33,434 nucleotides of DNA from contig NC_068989.1 of the NCBI RefSeq assembly GCF_001194135.2, positions 40,575,697-40,609,130 of the forward strand, in the 5' to 3' direction. The stretch's first letter is position 1. Every line of letters begins with the position of its first letter. Shown in pieces: positions 3,114 to 32,263 of this stretch. The position numbers were made by a program, and so were the translations under genes. The notes under the pieces are model-generated. The model had not been told where the DNA came from and made no database searches. It saw only the letters and a list, made by a program, of their open reading frames with translations. The stretch comes from Octopus bimaculoides (Eukaryota).

Positions 3114-3190
3114 NNNNNNNNNNNNNNNNNNNNNNNNNNNNNNNNNNNNNNNNNNNNNNNNNNNNNNNNNNNNNNNNNNNNNNNNNNNNN
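3114..3190. other. Assembly gap
   Basis: N run. Confidence 1.
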
Positions 3191-3619: not shown

Positions 3620-4902
3620 TTTAATGGAGGATCACGACCGGGAATTTTGAGGCAAAGGAAGGACAGCTGGGTTGATGACATTGATTTCATTACTTGAATG
3701 ACACTTGATTATTTTATCGGCACCCGAGCGATAAACAATAAAATTTGTCCCTAGTGAAATTTGAACAGAGAACGTAAAGTGCCGAAATTACAAAGAACTA
3801 TTGTCGGACGTCAAACTATTCCGCGAGTCTGTAGCCTCTGAATTTTATTTCTTATTTAGATTGGTAATTAATTTTGTTGGGATACTATCGATCCTATTAT
3901 ATGAGTGGTACTTTATTATATATCATGTCGACGTTGAAAGGATGAAAAGTAAAACTAGCCTCGGCGGGGTTTGAACTCAAAGCGCAAAGGGGAGAAACAA
4001 ATTATTTTATACGACGCTCTATAGATTCTACCAAATCACTGCCCAAATTATTGTTTTGAATTTAAGCACACGGTCAGTAATTTTGAGGGGGATATGTTAA
4101 GAAGTGCCGCTGACCAATATTCTTTTCAAATTTTGGCACAAGGCCAGCAGTTTCGGAGGAAGAGGTAAGTCGATTACATCGAGCTTACTGGTACTAATTT
4201 TATCCATCCCAAAGGGATGAAAGGCAAGGTCAACCTCAGCAAAATTTTGACTCTGGACGAAAAGACAGACGAAATACCGCAAAACATTTTGCTGGGCGTG
4301 CTAATAATTCTGCCAGCTCACCGCTCTGTCGTCGACCAATATTGAGTGGTAATTTAAGTTATTGATTCGTGAACAACGAAAGGCAAATTAGACCTCAGTG
4401 GGATTTGAACTCAAAACGCAAAGATGCAGATTAAATACTACAGGGCATTTTGTTTGGTGATCTAACGATTCAGCCAAATCGCTTCTTTAGAAACAAAGCT
4501 AGCTTTCTGATATAGGCACAAAACCAGCCAGTACGTGAGAGTACTTTATTTATCGACATTGGAATGATGAAAGGCAAAGTTTATCCTCGGCGAAATTTAA
4601 ACTTAGAACGTTGAGGGCTACAAGGCATTTTATTTGGTGATGTAACAATTCTGCCAATCTGCCACCCCGAAACATATTTTCTAATTTAGGTACAAAGCCC
4701 GTAATTTTGAGGAGGGTAGGCTAGCCGATACCGTTGACCTCAGAACGTGATTAGCAATTTATTGTATGGACAATAGCAGAATAAAAGGTATTGTTGACCT
4801 CAGCGGCATCTGAACTCAGGTTATTGAATATGAAACTGTGAAAGGTTTCAGTAGAAATACAGAAAATTATTTTGACCGACGCTCTGACAATTTTACAATT
4901 CT
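3620..4902 (-). mobile_element. Cluster of about 6 diverged family-1 SINE copies, all minus strand (~3620-3830, 3880-4050, 4122-4325, 4370-4485, 4505-4668, 4680-4902)
   Basis: Recurrent plus-strand AAGG(A/G)TGAAAGGCAA(A/G)GTC(A/G)ACCTC...ATTTGAACTCA core with a GATTCTGCCAGCTC-like head end. Boundaries are approximate. Confidence 0.8.
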
Positions 4903-5065
4903 TTTCTATTCTAGGCACAAGGCCGAAATTTTAGGGGAGGAAACCAGTCGATTAGATCGACTGCAGTACGCAACTGGTACTTAATTTATCGACACCGAAA
5001 GGGTGAAAGGCAAAGTCGACCTCGGTGGAATTTCAACTCGGAACGTAAAGACAGACGAAATACCA
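4903..5065 (-). mobile_element. 3' part (B box, core, tail) of a family-1 SINE split by Tx1-like insertions
   Basis: Begins on the minus strand at TGGTATTTCGTCTGTCTTTACG. B-box-like GAGTTGAAATTCC at 5027-5039. Tail GGCCTTGTGCCTAGAATAGAAA. Flanked by TSD copy 4884-4902. Confidence 0.92.
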
Positions 5066-5300
5066 ATTTCTTTAATGCCCACAGGGGCTAAACTTAGAAA
5101 TGGACAGAACAACTGATGGGATCGATAAATTGGTATGATTTTACATAAAATGTGACTTTTAAAATTAAATGAAATATAAAAAAAATCGAATGAAATTAAC
5201 AATACAGGGACAATACAAATGAAGCGATGATCAGGCCACGTTCCGACCCCACAAGCCCCGATCTATCGCTGGTATCTTTTTTGTTCTCTTTTTCGTCTAT

Positions 5301-5958
5301 TCACACGGTTCCTTTCATGTACAACACCGGTGCTACACGATTCCATCTCTTGTGGAACGTACACTCTGACAGACAACTCCTCTCCAGCCATACTTTCCTT
5401 TTCAAATGCTGACACAATCTGTGTGTGCCTCACATATTGTGTTAAAGTCTCCTAACAATACGAGTGAATGCGACGTGGCCAGGAACTTGTCCATGTCACG
5501 AAAATATTCACTTTGCGGGCCCATAATGTTGGGTGCATAAATAGCAACTAGCCTGATTATCTTGCCACAACTGAATGTCAGGTCAAGAGCGACCAACCTG
5601 CTTTTTGGGTTAGAAAAAAAAACAACTTTTTCTCGGCTACTCGGTTTCTTTTAAGTAGGATCAACACCCCACCTCCTGCCCGACTCGGNNNNNNNNNNTG
5701 GGTTAGAAAAAAAAACAACTTTTTCTCGGCTACTCGGTTTCTTTTAAGTAGGATCAACACCCCACCTCCTGCCCGACTCGGAGAAACGTAATTCTCATAG
5801 TCGTTCAGGAGGGAGAGCAGATCTCTTCGCCCCTTTACCCAGGTTTCCGTTGCAACAATCATATCCAATTTTCTTGACCTGATGTCATTTAGGAAGCGTT
5901 CTTGCTTCCAGATAGACATCAGGCCTCGAACATTTACACAACCAATGTGAATAGACAT
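5301..5958 (-). pseudogene. ORF2 remnant of element B: APE endonuclease fragment fused to the last ~35 aa of ORF2
   Basis: MSIHIGCVNVRGL...IVATETW...GGGVLILL...RLVAIYAPN...LVLLGDFN are APE motifs of L1/Tx1. After a frame change at ~5410 it reads HLKRKVWLERSCLSECTFHKRWNRVAPVLYMKGTV* (stop 5301-5303). No RT motifs. Confidence 0.85.
5689..5698. other. 10-N gap with ~84 bp duplicated on either side (assembly overlap)
   Basis: 5605-5688 repeats 5699-5782. Confidence 0.85.
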
Positions 5959-5968
5959 GACTTACCTG

Positions 5969-7234
5969 TTAATCAAGGCTGTCCGGTGGAGAGGGACCCT
6001 CCACCTTTTCTTGATACAAGGTCGGAAGTGACAGGTCTTGGAAAATAGATCGGTTAAAATCCAGTCTCATTACTGACACAGACTTTCTATACGTATTTAA
6101 TAAAATATTATGAGTCTTTTTGTCCATTTCATATAGTTCATAATTTTTGTATTTGTCCGACAGCTCTGCTATCCTGGTGGATAATTTTTTTGGTTCTTAT
6201 CTCTCTCATTAAATCCTCATTTTTACTATGTAGTGCCACAATTCCTCTGTCCGCTACTTCTTTCCTTGTTGTTTTTGGTTGGACTATTTTTGCTGTCTTT
6301 TTTGGTCGTGGTTCTATTTGTTTTGGTTGGTTTATATTTTCTATTTGTCTTTTGCTAGTTACTTTCTTTTCTGTTTCTTTTTCTTGCTCCTTATCTTCAG
6401 ATTCCTCCTCGCCTTCCCTGCAGTATTTTTTTTATATGACCTAGCTGGCAACACAGAAAACATCGGGGTTGACGCCCCTCGACAAAAACTTTGAGGAACT
6501 GCTCCCCAATTTCTATTTTTGCTGGAAACTGTTCCAATACAGCTTGTTGTGTTTGAAGAATCAGGTGGACCGTGTGGCCAGTCCTATTTGCTTTTTGAAG
6601 TAGTTTTATCTCATCTACTCTTTTTGATAGGACTGCCGCCATCAACTACATAGGGTCGACTTGAGGTGGGACCTTTGGTATTTGTATTTTGGCTGTCCTC
6701 ATACCCATGTATATTGGTATTAAAATCACGTCTTCTGTTTCCAATGATTTCACCGAGTGCAACTGTGCCGTTTCAATATTTTTTAGGTGTACTTCGATGG
6801 TACAGAACATTTTCTCTCTGGCTAGATATGTGATATCCTGCCAGGTGGGTTTTAAACATTTCTGTACCTTTTTCTCGTTTACGCGCTAGATTTTTCTTTC
6901 TTAGTTTTTTTCTTCTCTCTCAGTAAAAACTTTTCTTGCGGTTGAACCTTGACAACGCCGTCTTGAATTGTTATCATGTCCTTGTACATCAACAAATCAC
7001 TTTTATTCGTCGACAGTTGGCGAGTTTTATCTCCAGCTGCAGACGTAAAGCTTCTTTTCTGTTTGCCTTCCTCTGTTTGAAGGCTTTTCTCCTCGATGTT
7101 CCTCCTTGCAACGGGAGTCCTTGATAATAGTGGGAATTCATTTTCAGACGAATCTGAAATATCTTACAATAATATTTTTTTCAACTTTCTTGATCATTCG
7201 AATCCTCGTCAGACGAAGACAAGCTTTTTGGCAT
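5969..7234 (-). pseudogene. ORF1 (gag-like, zinc knuckle) of element B, disrupted
   Basis: MPKSLSSSDEDS... then VQKCLKPTWQDITYLAREKMFCTIEV...IPIYMGMRTAKIQIPKVPP...VFVEGRQPRCFLCCQLGHIKK...PSPPDSLD* (TAA 5969-5971), ending 10 nt before the ORF2 ATG at 5958. Contains internal stops and frameshifts. Confidence 0.78.
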
Positions 7235-7819
7235 CTTGCCAGCAATTAAAGTTTCCCCCTACAGGGGAAAACACACAATAGTATTGTAGTTCGCTTGAAG
7301 CGTTCTGTATTGTTTGTAAAGAATAAAAAGTTTAGAATGGTACAACAATGCACTATTGAACAAAAAAAATGGATTGTTGTAATTTGGTTATCTATAGTCC
7401 GATGATATTTCGGAATTACAATTCCTTCTTCAGATCTTCTTAGCTGGAGACTCTGCTATAAAAAAACTATTATACAAATTTAAACAAGGACAGCAAATAC
7501 AACAGGCAACAAAAACTACACTTACTATATCAACGCACTTCGGTAACAATACCAACACTTCCAACTCACAGAGACGGGATACCGATTTCTTTATTAGGCA
7601 TAAAGCCCTAAACATAAATGCGGGCACCACAAGGACAGACAAGACCACAGTGGGGACAAAAAACATAAAACGAAAGTAAATGAAATGAAAATTATATAAA
7701 AATGAAAAAAAAATGAAAATGCACGCATGGGCCCCACTCCCATGCAGTACCATTTGAACCGTTATATGTATTATTTACTATTGTTCTTTTTTTTCCTTTA
7801 ATTTCATACTTTTTTGTCT

Positions 7820-9105
7820 TTAGTAGCACTTCATTAGTGGTTCGATATCTCTCAAATCCATCACTGGTGGCAACTCTTTAAATTCCACCTCCACTTCTTG
7901 CGGGTCAACGTTATCTCCACACATCTCTTTCAATTTTCTGTAGTTTTCCTCTTCGATCAATATTGCCTTCATATCCTCCGCGTAGACGTATGAAGGCACC
8001 TTTACTCTTATTATTGAATGTAACTTGATTTTTTTTTTCTCTGTTTCAACATTTTTTGGTACGTTACTTAATACCATACTCCTTCTCCTCGTATCTTTTT
8101 TCCTTTCTCTTGGACTTTTGGTTCTCTCTTTTCTTCCTCCATAAATAGTCTCTCCTTCTCACTTTCATACAGTTGGCTTTCCGACACTTTCTCCACTGGT
8201 AACTCCACTTTCTTTTTCCTTCCTACTGCCCTCTTTCACAGTTTCTTAACACCCCCCCTTCTCTCTTCTTTTTCTGCTTCTCTGGCGGAGAACTCATTCC
8301 TCTGCTCCTCCTCCTTTTCTTTATAACTATAGTGAATCTCTTCTCCGCTTCTTTTTCCGTTACCTTGTCCTGTACTACCTGGTGCACACTCTCCTGTCTC
8401 TCCTCCTGTTCTGGTTGTGACTTTCTTTGGGTTCAACATGCCTTCATGTGGCTCCTTTCTCCACATGTGAAACACACTGACGGCCTACCCTCCACAGTAA
8501 CTCTCAGTCTCACATCTTCTGACAGCACAATCTCCTCCACACACTGTCCAAGTCCTCTGTTGTTGCCTAAATCGTTAATTCGATCCCATATCCCCACTAA
8601 TCTACCTTCTGGGTCTTTGTAGCCTTCAGTATCTTCCCGTCTTTCTTATTATATATTATGGCTGTCATCAGCCATTCTTCTTTCATTTCGGGTGGCACCT
8701 TACCCACTCGCACCTCGGCCACACGTTTGCCGCAGTACGAACGCTAGAGCACCCATTCCTCTGTCCTTATTGCCTCTGTGGAGTTCTTTATTGCTTCCTC
8801 CTCGTTGTGAAGCGCACCTCCACAGTGGCGTATCTTCTCCCTCTCGTAATATATGTCATGAATCTTTTTATATTCTTAACACATTCTTCTATGGCATCTA
8901 TTGCTGCTATTTATAGCTTTCTTGTGGTTGCCTTCATGGTTTTGAATATAACCGTTCTTTTTTGTCACGTTGACCGATAGCTCTTCAGGCGGTGTCAGCT
9001 TCAAAATGTTTCCTTCCTTTGTGATTAATTTCTCACTCTCCTTCATCTTTCTAAGCTCCACTTTTATCTCGCATAACTTGGGTCTGCCTCCGGCTCCTTC
9101 TCCAT
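7820..9105 (-). pseudogene. ORF1 (gag-like, zinc knuckle) of element A, disrupted
   Basis: MEKEPEADPSYA(fs)EIKVELRKM...FMTYITRGRRYATVEVRF...YCGKRVAEVRVGKVPPEMKEEWLMTAII...VTVEGRPSVCFTCGERSHMKAC...IEPLMKCY*. Collinear with ORF1 of element B. Confidence 0.75.
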
Positions 9106-9154
9106 TTTCCCACAATGGGAAACAAAATAACAATTAACGAATTAACAACTTTGA

Positions 9155-9219
9155 CAACAATTCAATCAACAATGGCAGCAATTCAAGCAACAATTCAATC
9201 AACAATGGCAACAATTCAA
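9155..9219 (-). repeat. Two 33-bp tandem units in the 5'UTR of element A
   Basis: CAACAATTCAATCAACAATGGCARCAATTCAA at 9155-9186 and 9188-9219, one mismatch. Confidence 0.9.
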
Positions 9220-9259
9220 TAAACAGTTCAACATAAACTCACGTATCAACTTCACAGAG

Positions 9260-9309
9260 ACCGCTAAGCAGTTCGACCGTCGTGCTAACTTTTCTACCGG
9301 TTCACCGCC
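9260..9309 (-). mobile_element. 5' head (A box) of the split family-1 SINE
   Basis: Minus strand GGCGGTGAACCGGTAGAAAAGTTAGCACGACGGTCGAACTGCTTAGCGGT, stopping where element A starts. TSD copy 9310-9328. Confidence 0.9.
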
Positions 9310-9354
9310 CTGACAATTTTGCAATTCTACCACCCTACAGGTACTTTGAATAGT

Positions 9355-10557: not shown

Positions 10558-10639
10558 NNNNNNNNNNNNNNNNNNNNNNNNNNNNNNNNNNNNNNNNNNN
10601 NNNNNNNNNNNNNNNNNNNNNNNNNNNNNNNNNNNNNNN
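10558..10639. other. Assembly gap
   Basis: N run, preceded by a 3' fragment of family-2 SINE (10527-10557). Confidence 1.
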
Positions 10640-13551: not shown

Positions 13552-13765
13552 TTCTCTCTGTTATAGGCAAGAGGCCTGAAACTTGGGGGAGGGACAATAG
13601 ACTACATCAACCGCAGTACTTGACTGGTACTTTATTTCATCGATTCCGAAAGGATGAAAGGCAACATCGACTCTGCGGAATTTGAACTTAGAACGTAAAG
13701 AATCGGAAGAAATGCTACTAAGTAATTTATCCAGTGCGGTAACGATTCGGTCAGCTCACCTCCTT
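13552..13765 (-). mobile_element. Family-1 SINE
   Basis: Head, core and tail recognisable. Confidence 0.8.
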
Positions 13766-13774
13766 AGCAATTGT

Positions 13775-14305
13775 TTCTTCTAAAGGCACAAGGCCGAGAA
13801 TTTTTAGATGAGTGACGAGTCAATAACATTGACCTGAGTCCTTTGACTGTTACGTCTTTTTATCGATCCCGGATGGATAAAAGGCAAAGTATATCTCAAT
13901 GAACTGAGAATGTAAAAAGAATCGGAATAAACACCACAACCCATTTTCCGACGCCCTAATAGTTCTGTTGACTCAGTGGTTCTCAACCATTTTTTTAATT
14001 TGTGGATCCTTTTGATTACTATTTTACTCTGGTGGACCCCCATAGCCACTCGATGTTTAAAAATCAGTTTTACAAATACAGCTTTCAAAATTCTTATTTT
14101 GTTTTTCACACATTGAACCATGTAGCATGTTAGAGAAAGAAACCCAGCTGTCTCTTGCAATAAATACATCTAAAGGAACCCTTAATGTACTGCTTTGGCG
14201 TCCTGAATTTACTATTCTGCTTACGTGAACCCCCAAAAATCTTATATTAGACCCTCAAAGGCCATACGGACCCCAGTTGAAAGCCACTGTGCTAACTCAT
14301 TACCT
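13775..14305 (-). mobile_element. Family-1 SINE interrupted in its head by a MITE
   Basis: Tail at 13775, core ~13830-13920, head split at 13974-14289. Confidence 0.65.
13974..14289. mobile_element. hAT-superfamily MITE (316 bp)
   Basis: TIRs CAGTGGTTCTCAACC / CAGTGGCTTTCAACT (12/15). Degenerate 8-bp TSD TGTTGACT / TGCTAACT (6/8). CAGTGG termini and an 8-bp TSD are hAT hallmarks. Confidence 0.8.
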
Positions 14306-19290: not shown

Positions 19291-19706
19291 GTGTGTGTGT
19301 GTGTGTGTGTTATTTTATTTCTTTACTACCCACAAGGGGCTACACACAGAGGGGACAAACAAGGACAGACAAACGGATTAAGTCGATTATATCGACCCAG
19401 TGCGTAACTGGTACTTATTTAATCGACCCCGAAAGGATGAAAGGCAAAGTCGACCTCGGCGGAATTTGAACTCAGAACGTAGCAGCAGACGAAATACCGC
19501 TAAGCATTTCGCCCGCCGTGCTAACGATTCTGCCAGCTCGCCGCCTATATGTGTGTGTGTGTGTGTGTATGTGTGTATATGTATAGACTCACACATACGA
19601 CGGGCTCCTTTCAGTTTTTATCTGCCAAATCCACTTACAGAGTTTAAGTCGGCCTAGACTATAATAGACATTTACACAAAGTGTCACAGAGTGGCACCTT
19701 ATAGAT
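18905..19706 (-). mobile_element. Old family-2 (CORE-type) SINE with an expanded internal (CATA)n/(TG)n microsatellite, interrupted by a family-1 SINE
   Basis: 3' half at ~18905-19170 and 5' half at ~19590-19706 are homologous to the copy at 22108-22533. Confidence 0.65.
19311..19545 (-). mobile_element. Young family-1 SINE variant with a Tx1-like 3' tail; contains an intact target site
   Basis: GGCGGCGAGCTGGCAGAATCGTTAGCACGGCGGGCGAAATGCTTAGCGGTATTTCGTCTG head, GAGTTCAAATTCC B-box, tail TTGTCTGTCCTTGTTTGTCCCCTCTGTGTGTAGCCCCTTGTGGGTAGTAAAGAAAT. Confidence 0.93.
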
Positions 19707-20513: not shown

Positions 20514-20613
20514 NNNNNNNNNNNNNNNNNNNNNNNNNNNNNNNNNNNNNNNNNNNNNNNNNNNNNNNNNNNNNNNNNNNNNNNNNNNNNNNNNNNNNNN
20601 NNNNNNNNNNNNN
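20514..20613. other. Assembly gap within a (TA)n microsatellite
   Basis: N run. Confidence 1.
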
Positions 20614-29129: not shown

Positions 29130-29750
29130 CAGGAATGGAAGTTCTGTTATCTTGGTGTGGTCGAGAAGCATGCAGAGCGACGAAGCTTTTCTCCAGCACT
29201 CGAGGATTTCTGAGTTGCGGGTTTTATCGAATATCTGTCACGCGAGGACGCATGCTGCTATTAGCTAAGCGCACTTTTAAAACCATCTCATCACCTTCCC
29301 TTTTCCAAGAAATACAGGTAGCGTTTATCTGTCTGGTAGTCTAACGAAGGATGTGTGGTGGACCAAAATGTCTCTGGTTAAACGCTCGTCAGCTTTTGCA
29401 AGCTTTACTTTGCATAGGAAAGTGAGGGTGGAAAGAAGAGTGCTGCCTTCCCACAAATTTGTTGAAAGGTGAGTGAACGTGACAACAACTCTCCGAGTGT
29501 ACGGGCTTACACTGAACATACACCTCTAGATTCACGGAGGAGAAAGTAAGTGTTTGTCCTCCTGGTTAGGCAACCGAGGTTTGTGATGTTCCCACAATAG
29601 CTATTAGGAGTCTGCCCTCTTTAGGGTAATTTTTATTGTTTCAATTTTCTTCTTTCTTTGTTTTTGTTTGACAGTTTACAGCCATTCTTGTAATCCCTCA
29701 TCATATCACTGTGTTGTATCATCTTGTGCCGTCCTTGCTCTGTGTGTAAG
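29130..29750 (+). mobile_element. L1/Tx1-clade LINE 3' fragment 'C' (ORF2 C-terminus plus 3'UTR)
   Basis: Frameshifted ...AFICLVV...KDVWWTK...TLHRKVRVERRVLPSHKFVER*VNV...GLTLNIHL* matches the element B C-terminus (HLKRKVWLER...F.KRW.RV). The 3'UTR ends GTCCTTGCTCTGTGTGTAAG. Confidence 0.7.
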
Positions 29751-29910
29751 CAGCATTTCTTCCGATTTTATATTTGGAGTTCAAATTCTGTTGATGTTGA
29801 CGTTGTTTTTCAGCCTTTCAAGTTCAATAACATAGGCACCAGTTAAGCACTGGGGCCCATTTAATCAACTAACCATCTCACAAAAAAAATCGGGCTTTGT
29901 GCCTCTAGTA
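29751..29910 (+). mobile_element. Family-1 SINE lacking its 5' head, starting at the Tx1 target position
   Basis: Begins CAGCATTTCTTCCG...GGAGTTCAAATTC, aligning to CGGTATTTCGTC; tail GGGCTTTGTGCCTCTAGTAG. Confidence 0.7.
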
Positions 29911-29911
29911 G

Positions 29912-30127
29912 TAAGAATTAAAGGCAGCGAGTTAGCAGAACCGTAAGCGCGCTAGACAAAATGGTTAGCAGGTTTTAGTCTAGTTTTACATTCTAAATTC
30001 AAACTCTACCCAGGTCGACTTTCACCGTTTCAGCGTTGATTAAATGAGTACCAATTGTGTATTGGGTTGATGTAATCGGTTATAATCCTACTCTAAAATT
30101 TCATGCCTTGTGCTGATAGTAGAAAGG
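29912..30127 (+). mobile_element. Family-1 SINE followed by (GAT)n/(AAT)n/(ATT)n repeats (30128-30246)
   Basis: GGCAGCGAGTTAGCAGAACCG head; tail TGCCTTGTGCTGATAGTAGAAAGG. Confidence 0.8.
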
Positions 30128-30249: not shown

Positions 30250-30595
30250 ACAGCGGTGAGCTGGAAGTATCGTTAGCCTGCCGGGCGAAATGCTTAGCTG
30301 CGAATTGGCAGAATATTTAGCATACCACACAAAATGATTTGCATCAATTAGTCCAGTTACATTCTGAATTCAAACTTCGCCAAAGTCGACTGGGCCATCT
30401 GTCCTTTCGAGCTCGATAAAATAAATAACAATTGCGCATTGTGATGAATGTAATCGACTAACCCCCGCCTCCCAAAATTTCAGGTTTCGTACCTATAATA
30501 GAAAGGATCTTTGGGTTCATAAAATAAGTACTAGGGTCAATGTAATCGACTTAAAACCTCCCTGAAATTGCTGGTCGTGTGCCAAAATTTGAAAC

Positions 30596-31775: not shown

Positions 31776-32263
31776 NNNNNNNNNNNNNNNNNNNNNNNNN
31801 NNNNNNNNNNNNNNNNNNNNNNNNNNNNNNNNNNNNNNNNNNNNNNNNNNNNNNNNNNNNNNNNNNNNNNNNNNNNNNNNNNNNNNNNNNNNNNNNNNNN
31901 NNNNNNNNNNNNNNNNNNNNNNNNNNNNNNNNNNNNNNNNNNNNNNNNNNNNNNNNNNNNNNNNNNNNNNNNNNNNNNNNNNNNNNNNNNNNNNNNNNNN
32001 NNNNNNNNNNNNNNNNNNNNNNNNNNNNNNNNNNNNNNNNNNNNNNNNNNNNNNNNNNNNNNNNNNNNNNNNNNNNNNNNNNNNNNNNNNNNNNNNNNNN
32101 NNNNNNNNNNNNNNNNNNNNNNNNNNNNNNNNNNNNNNNNNNNNNNNNNNNNNNNNNNNNNNNNNNNNNNNNNNNNNNNNNNNNNNNNNNNNNNNNNNNN
32201 NNNNNNNNNNNNNNNNNNNNNNNNNNNNNNNNNNNNNNNNNNNNNNNNNNNNNNNNNNNNNNN
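31776..32263. other. Assembly gap after (TA)n
   Basis: N run. Confidence 1.

Follow-up and report, generated by a model that had tools for sequence, protein, structure and literature searches.

A 33,434-nt stretch of Octopus bimaculoides DNA (hereafter the window, the positions of which serve as coordinates throughout) contains one copy of a short interspersed element (SINE) that harbors two long interspersed elements (LINEs), termed A and B, inserted at one and the same point. Read 5' to 3' on the minus strand, this host SINE runs from 9328 to 4884 including its own target site duplication (TSD) and is interrupted after GCTTAG by element A, a short spacer and element B, as seen by direct reading (Table 1). 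Head and body belong to the same SINE copy, since the 19-bp TSD pair at the outer borders matches in 18 of 19 positions. The uninterrupted state is represented by an intact SINE elsewhere in the window, in which the empty site GCTTAG^CGGTATTTCGT (uninterrupted GCTTAGCGGTATTTCGT) is found at 19505-19489. When A, spacer and B are removed, the host SINE aligns with ten other copies, the sole difference being a 4-nt duplication, CGGT/TGGT. The nested layout and the empty site proposed in the initial annotation of this stretch thus hold almost to the base, both by direct reading and by comparison with the intact SINE.

Each insert is accompanied by a short duplication of the target. The last 4 nt of the SINE head (CGGT) constitute the upstream copy of a 4-bp duplication belonging to element A, and the spacer serves at once as the downstream copy of this duplication and as the upstream copy of an 11-bp duplication belonging to element B. 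The border between A and B is ambiguous by 1-2 nt, as C/CT is common to element and target there. A spacer of 12 bp (9/12 identical to the downstream target), as had been suggested initially, can be read equally well; however, a spacer of 11 bp (8/11) and a start of B at 7573 are likelier because both elements then open with CTCTGTGA.

Table 1. Coordinates of the nested SINE/LINE structure, of the assembly artefact within it and of the intact reference SINE.
Feature	Position	Strand	Basis or remarks
Host SINE TSD, upstream copy AGAATTGCAAAATTGTCAG	9328-9310	-	18/19 identical to 4902-4884
Host SINE head, 50 nt, 3' end GCTTAGCGGT	9309-9260	-	nhmmer SINE model positions 3-55, alignment, direct reading
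Element A, 1675 bp, first nt CTCTGTGAAG, last nt TAATAAAGAAAT	9259-7585	-	direct reading
Regenerated target (spacer) CGGTATCCCGT, 11 bp	7584-7574	-	8/11 identical to TGGTATTTCGT at 5065-5055
Element B, 2508 bp as assembled, first nt CTCTGTGAG, last nt ATTAAAGAAAT	7573-5066	-	direct reading
Assembly artefact in B: 10-N gap 5689-5698, exact 83-bp duplicate on either side (5699-5781 = 5606-5688)	5606-5781	-	83/83 identical
Host SINE body and tail, first nt TGGTATTTCGTCTG, last nt CCTAGAATAGAAA	5065-4903	-	nhmmer model positions 49-207, E = 5.8e-47; alignment
Host SINE TSD, downstream copy AGAATTGTAAAATTGTCAG	4902-4884	-	pairs with 9328-9310
Intact reference SINE	19545-19311	-	empty site, inverted repeat, LINE-type tail, 22-bp flanking duplication

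Both LINE 3' ends adjoin YGGTAT at the same bond, and reading of the junctions also supports the earlier statement that both ends join the same target base and that the target is regenerated between A and B. The pattern AAAGAAATYGGTA has two matches in the whole window, namely the A and B junctions. The agreement of the spacer with the downstream target is unlikely to arise by chance (P(>=8/11) = 1.2e-3), and all three mismatches are C/T transitions. The chance of a second random insertion at the same phosphodiester bond in a window of 33 kb is about 1e-5.

An explanation that involves no targeting at all, i.e., local duplication, misassembly or chance nesting in a SINE-rich genome, is very improbable. 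It could draw on the gapped scaffold, which contains at least one unmerged overlap inside B, and on the density of SINE fragments in the window (29 in 33 kb, detected by nhmmer). On the other hand, A and B cannot be aligned as DNA (no match by blastn) and their first open reading frames (ORF1) are homologous with an identity of just 27% (E = 5e-14), so that separate insertions have to be assumed and a duplication is excluded, as had been concluded earlier on the basis of their divergence. Misassembly of the nested structure is unlikely because the A-B junction shares just 11 bp, the junctions are far from gaps and the TSD copies of the host SINE on either side of the structure match; in addition, chance would have had to hit the same bond twice. 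The gap at 5689-5698 is an unmerged overlap without effect on the junctions, from every one of which it is more than 600 nt away. Duplicate and gap together amount to 83 + 10 = 93 nt or 31 codons, so the endonuclease reading frame continues with or without collapsing; removal of the duplicate reduces the length of B to about 2415 bp. Four other assembly gaps are present in the window (3114-3190, 10558-10639, 20514-20613 and 31776-32263).

Structure and affiliation of elements A and B

Elements A and B are complete at their ends, internally deleted and dead. At the 5' end, their first 8 nt are identical (P = 1.5e-5), and their 3' ends are built alike, with a 4-bp hairpin followed by (A/T)TAAAGAAAT and without poly(A). 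In A, the hairpin occupies 7609-7596 of the 3' untranslated region (UTR), in B it is located at 5088-5077, and in both cases it precedes the terminal nucleotides listed in Table 1.

The 5' UTR of element A carries a 33-bp tandem repeat in 2.3 copies (9231-9155, minus strand; sense-strand unit CTTGAATTGTTGCCATTGTTGATTGAATTGTTG), which recalls the monomeric promoter repeats of some LINEs. Its decayed ORF1 starts with an ATG at 9105, encodes a zinc knuckle, CFTCGERSHMKAC (CX2CX4HX3C), at 8474-8436 and has its last stop at 7820. Element A lacks ORF2 entirely despite the presence of both termini and ORF1, and is thus unable to move on its own. It may represent an ORF1-only, non-autonomous derivative instead of the product of a random deletion, although it is a single copy and blastn detected no further copies of it in the window. 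Mammalian HAL1 is an ORF1-only, non-autonomous LINE derivative, and A resembles it in retaining 5' UTR, ORF1 and 3' UTR without ORF2; it differs in that one decayed copy cannot show amplification of such a form.

Element B likewise contains a decayed ORF1 behind a 5' UTR, with an ATG at 7234 and a knuckle remnant, CFLCCQLGH, at 6462-6436 (CX2CX4H, the last Cys being lost). In addition, a remnant of ORF2 is present that comprises the first ~150 amino acids of an APE endonuclease (5958-5402, one frameshift within a T-run) and that an internal deletion has joined straight to a 3' UTR of ~330 nt. The endonuclease fragment matches the Pfam family Exo_endo_phos (4.5e-10), and a profile built from it and 23 related fragments found human L1 ORF2p endonuclease chains as its best relatives of solved structure (3.6e-7), with no chain named R1 or TRAS endonuclease among those listed at E <= 1. 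A Pfam search with both ORF1 products gave no match, and no reverse transcriptase domain survives in A or B. By its endonuclease, placement of the family in the L1/Tx1 group is supported, though not specifically in the Tx1 clade, and A and B appear to be members of two old, diverged subfamilies of one such LINE family.

With regard to the 5' ends, the sequence CTCTGTGAGTTGGAAG (7561-7573 and 9247-9259, minus strand) bears a loose resemblance to a B-box-like region of the SINE, TTCTGAGTTCAAAT, and the LINE 5'-end pattern also matches the SINE B-box region in a contig from another species (L032) with 4 mismatches. This likeness may be due either to chance or to an old capture of SINE sequence.

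The target site and the proposed route of insertion

The insertion point coincides with the apical loop of a conserved imperfect 14-bp inverted repeat in the SINE head (19516-19485, minus strand, in the reference copy), with the stem arms GCGGGCGAAATGCT and GGTATTTCGTCTGC and the loop TAGC, inside which the elements are inserted. For the 95-nt SINE head, a fold of -45 kcal/mol (z = -4.4) is predicted. Direct counting of pairs in 11 SINE copies yielded 76.7% pairing cells in the hairpin register vs. 31-53% in slid registers, while RNAalifold, applied to the decayed copies, failed to detect the hairpin; this conservation of pairing is inheritance and falls short of proven covariation. The SINE head was not recognized as a tRNA by ARAGORN nor did it match any Rfam tRNA even at E <= 10. 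An A-box-like motif, TGGCAGAAT, and a B-box-like motif, GAGTTCAAATTCC, can be seen by eye, and it is on such box-like motifs that the putative designation as a tRNA-SINE rests.

The arrangement is probably best explained by a site-specific LINE of the L1/Tx1 group that is of a known kind and uses a new target, i.e., a fixed site within a SINE. Each element would have entered via target-primed reverse transcription. On the bottom strand, the endonuclease of the family would have made a nick opposite GCTTAG^CGGT, within the apical loop that caps the inverted repeat; the cut in the top strand would lie 4 nt (A) or 11 nt (B) further downstream. The resulting duplication would restore the recognition sequence beside the first insert, where a second family member could then enter the same bond, giving rise to a head-to-tail pair. 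This scheme is equally compatible with two orders of events. B may have come first, followed by A into the upstream copy of the duplication generated by B, in which case recognition would lie within GCTTAG^CGGTATTTCGT; or A may have come first, followed by B into the downstream copy, in which case recognition would lie within ^CGGTATTTCGTCTG...

The position of the site in a hairpin loop brings up a second, unlikely explanation, in which the whole structure is a chimera formed by template switching during one single retrotransposition event at the AGAATTG... site that started on SINE RNA. Reverse transcriptase would have stalled at the apex of the SINE hairpin and jumped to the 3' end of B RNA. 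Having copied B RNA from end to end, it would have returned to the SINE RNA a few nt past the stall, stalled again at the same base, jumped to A RNA and, after copying this too, returned to the SINE RNA once more to finish the head. The shared junction would then mark a stall point on RNA instead of an endonuclease site. Apart from the hairpin and its folding and pairing values given above, with the junction in the tetraloop, such a scenario is in agreement with the single A/T-rich 19-bp TSD around the whole composite, as for ordinary SINEs in the window, with the joining of both LINE RNAs precisely at their 3' and 5' termini, which end-to-end jumps would lead one to expect, and with another SINE in the window that begins at model position 47. 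In template-switch chimeric retrocopies of the U6-L1 type, several RNAs are likewise arranged end to end with one TSD pair around them, but the A/B locus would differ by the repeated internal re-entry of one RNA. Known template jumps land on the 3' ends of acceptor RNAs. When the locus is compared with a structure in which all acceptor RNAs are attached via their 3' ends and a single TSD pair encloses the whole, the TSD and the LINE 3' ends fit, whereas the internal re-entries into the SINE do not: four switches would be required in one event, and two of these would have to re-enter the SINE RNA internally, at points where microhomology amounts to 0-2 nt. Furthermore, staggered nicks generate precisely such overlaps as those of 4 and 11 nt seen here, and tandem copies sandwiching a TSD have been documented for sequential targeted insertion (PMC4494074).

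We judge a third possibility to be similarly improbable, namely that the site is a structural hot spot, a hairpin or cruciform loop prone to nicking, where a LINE with relaxed endonuclease specificity, or one acting without its endonuclease, twice used a break that was already there, with no recognition of sequence. The location at the center of the imperfect inverted repeat is compatible with this idea, as are the insertion of the partner SINEs at unrelated sites and a SINE-in-SINE arrangement at 30252-30588, the upstream border of which falls on the same GCTTAG position. Contrary to what would be expected from lesion repair, however, both LINE 3' ends are complete, joined to the same bond and accompanied by short duplications, which fits endonuclease-dependent priming better. 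Clustering of SINE breakpoints near the site is not significant when the host copy is left out (2-3 of 16-17 internal borders, P ~0.04-0.17).

Returning to site-specific insertion of an L1/Tx1-group LINE, a more far-reaching version is conceivable and put forward here only tentatively: a cephalopod lineage of this group may land in the hairpin loop of an abundant SINE that bears the 3' tail of that very family. The LINE would then find a refuge in its own parasite, and arrays could expand because every insertion would restore the site.

Shared tails, related copies and known target-specific LINEs

The connection between SINE and LINE that underlies this version stems from the tails. All LINE and SINE tails contain a hairpin of 4-5 bp about 11 nt from the end. 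The tail of the intact SINE ending at 19311 (hairpin 19340-19328, then TAAAGAAAT) aligns with B over 48 nt and with A over 58 nt, at scores that none of 500 shuffles equaled, which indicates that this SINE subfamily borrowed the 3' end of the A/B LINE family. The more common type-1 SINE tail, GGCCTTGTGCCTATAATAGAAA, resembles the end of A less strongly (equaled by 0-6 of 500 shuffles). Six SINE copies, including the host, are flanked by TSDs of 9-22 bp; among the duplications are AATATTGGTC, ATTATTCAA, AATATAATTA... and AGAATTG.... These open in A/T-rich sequence, which suggests that the mobilizer of the SINEs has an L1-like preference for A/T. The A/B site (G^CGGTAT; TSDs 4 and 11 bp long) differs from these A/T-rich sites, arguing for a distinct endonuclease specificity.

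A number of observations weigh against site-specific targeting by the A/B family. Only two events are available, both at a single locus, and the window contains several intact targets that carry no insert. The duplication of B has diverged in 3 of 11 positions vs. 1 of 19 in the TSD of the host SINE. The intact reference SINE, although it carries the tail of the A/B family, is not inserted at the target but in a long (AC)n/(ATGT)n microsatellite with a 22-bp (AC)nATAT duplication at its flanks, so that whatever copies the LINE-type tail is not strictly specific for CGGTAT. Type-1 SINE tails resemble that of A, yet these SINEs reside at A/T-rich sites, and four other SINE copies with clear TSDs of 9-19 bp are also found at A/T-rich sites and not at CGGTAT. 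This discrepancy is the chief reservation from within the window and leaves two options: mobilization of the SINEs by relatives whose endonuclease prefers other sites, or a site choice by A and B that is not determined by the enzyme alone. Related LINE copies of another octopod-like species show no SINE flank, with copy ends that are not definable. One of them, L031, is roughly complete at its 5' end and has no SINE head upstream; its terminus is inexact and its identity in the APE region is just 66-71%. This copy gives a weak hint that targeting is not common to all relatives.

The latter copies derive from searches outside the window. A protein search with the B endonuclease fragment gave no matches, whereas a profile of 24 family fragments retrieved 7 short proteins and a full HMMER scan about 60 short family fragments, all of which originate from ENA metagenomes and a small number of sequencing runs (SRR118693xx). 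Contigs of 0.9-7.6 kb from the other octopod-like species contain loci (L001-L002 and L028-L042) that are 66-76% identical to the endonuclease region of B. SINE matches are sparse in these contigs (3 in ~23 kb vs. 29 in 33 kb in the window), and the loci exhibit neither a recognizable LINE terminus nor a SINE-target junction. Concatenated open frames from the LINE ends, used as a probe for junction-bearing contigs, detected nothing, and the 25 matches to the junction AAAGAAATYGGTATYYYGTC in a metagenome scan were chance matches, none of them being associated with SINE or LINE. Two candidates were discarded because they scored no better than shuffles, namely ACTGC..AGCGGTC in L033 as a junction match and a candidate 3' end in L031.

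Insertion at fixed positions of other transposons is established for families of the Tx1 clade, including Tx1L of Xenopus, which inserts into Tx1D, and crocodilian Tx1-Mar, which targets Mariner-N4_AMi and has SINEU-3 as its partner SINE (Kojima, 2015; PMC4494074). Other Tx1-clade families target long terminal repeat (LTR) elements and Harbinger transposons, and tandem copies sandwiching a TSD have been reported for SINEU-3 (PMC4494074). The octopus case resembles Tx1L and Tx1-Mar in that a LINE of APE type is found at a single site, and in a single orientation, within an abundant interspersed repeat, in that a partner SINE has the 3' tail of the LINE and in that poly(A) is lacking. Tandem copies around a regenerated TSD are a further parallel to Tx1-Mar, there in SINEU-3, here in the LINEs A and B. 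On the other hand, the octopus target is a SINE and, within it, a hairpin loop, the host is a mollusc and A and B are assigned to the L1/Tx1 group only. Moreover, 90% of SINEU-3 copies keep the target preference, which the octopus partner SINEs in the window do not, and the octopus case departs from the known Tx1 systems in that the target SINE family itself bears the tail of the same LINE family.

A second set of Tx1-clade elements, Dewa, Keno and Mutsu, has tRNA, U2 snRNA and 5S rRNA genes as targets (Kojima and Fujiwara, 2004, as cited in PMC4494074). The octopus locus is comparable by its multicopy target of small-RNA-like character, given the tRNA-like box motifs that were seen by eye in the host SINE, and differs in that the target is a dispersed retroposon instead of a tandem gene array, with a head that ARAGORN and Rfam do not identify as tRNA.

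Annotations of octopus repeats include L1-Tx1 families (PMC13282606; PMC8967140). A literature search, which did not extend to Repbase and Dfam, yielded no description of an octopus LINE that targets a SINE. As site-targeting in transposons is already known for the Tx1 clade, the novelty here, if real, is the class of target. If the preference held genome-wide, a SINE would join the targets of Tx1-type elements, which so far comprise small-RNA genes, microsatellites, DNA transposons and LTR elements. There would then also be a molluscan example of a target-specific Tx1-type element and a case of a LINE landing in SINEs with the tail of its own family. Moreover, the acquisition of specificity by L1-like endonucleases could be studied on a recognition sequence that is short and defined, comprising at most GCTTAG^CGGTATTTCGTCTG and located in a hairpin loop. 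Such a finding, if real, would be of moderate interest to transposon specialists. Octopus repeat annotation would be affected as well, as automated consensus building tends to merge such LINEs with SINE flanks.

Three further SINE arrangements in the window are recorded here as side observations. In the SINE-in-SINE at 30252-30588 (plus strand), the outer SINE, itself flanked by (ATT)n, is broken after GCTTAG at model position 51, i.e., at the A/B site, contains a full SINE at 30297-30499 and resumes at model position ~119, with ~60 nt of the target missing. In contrast to A and B, the coincidence concerns the 5' border here, and this arrangement alone is not significant. At 29640-29760 (plus strand), a SINE body starts at model position 47 and follows T-rich sequence and GTCCTTG...CTCTGTGTGTA, an 11-mer that also occurs unchanged in the LINE-type tail of the intact reference SINE. 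This could be a third, 3'-truncated tail beside the target; however, the alignment scores lack significance (6-7 of 300 shuffles), and upstream of the SINE body no similarity to coding sequence was found. Finally, SINE copies are packed head-to-tail at 4130-4900 and 13561-13975 on the minus strand and at 29749-30120 on the plus strand, each copy starting a few to 25 nt after the A-rich tail of the preceding one.

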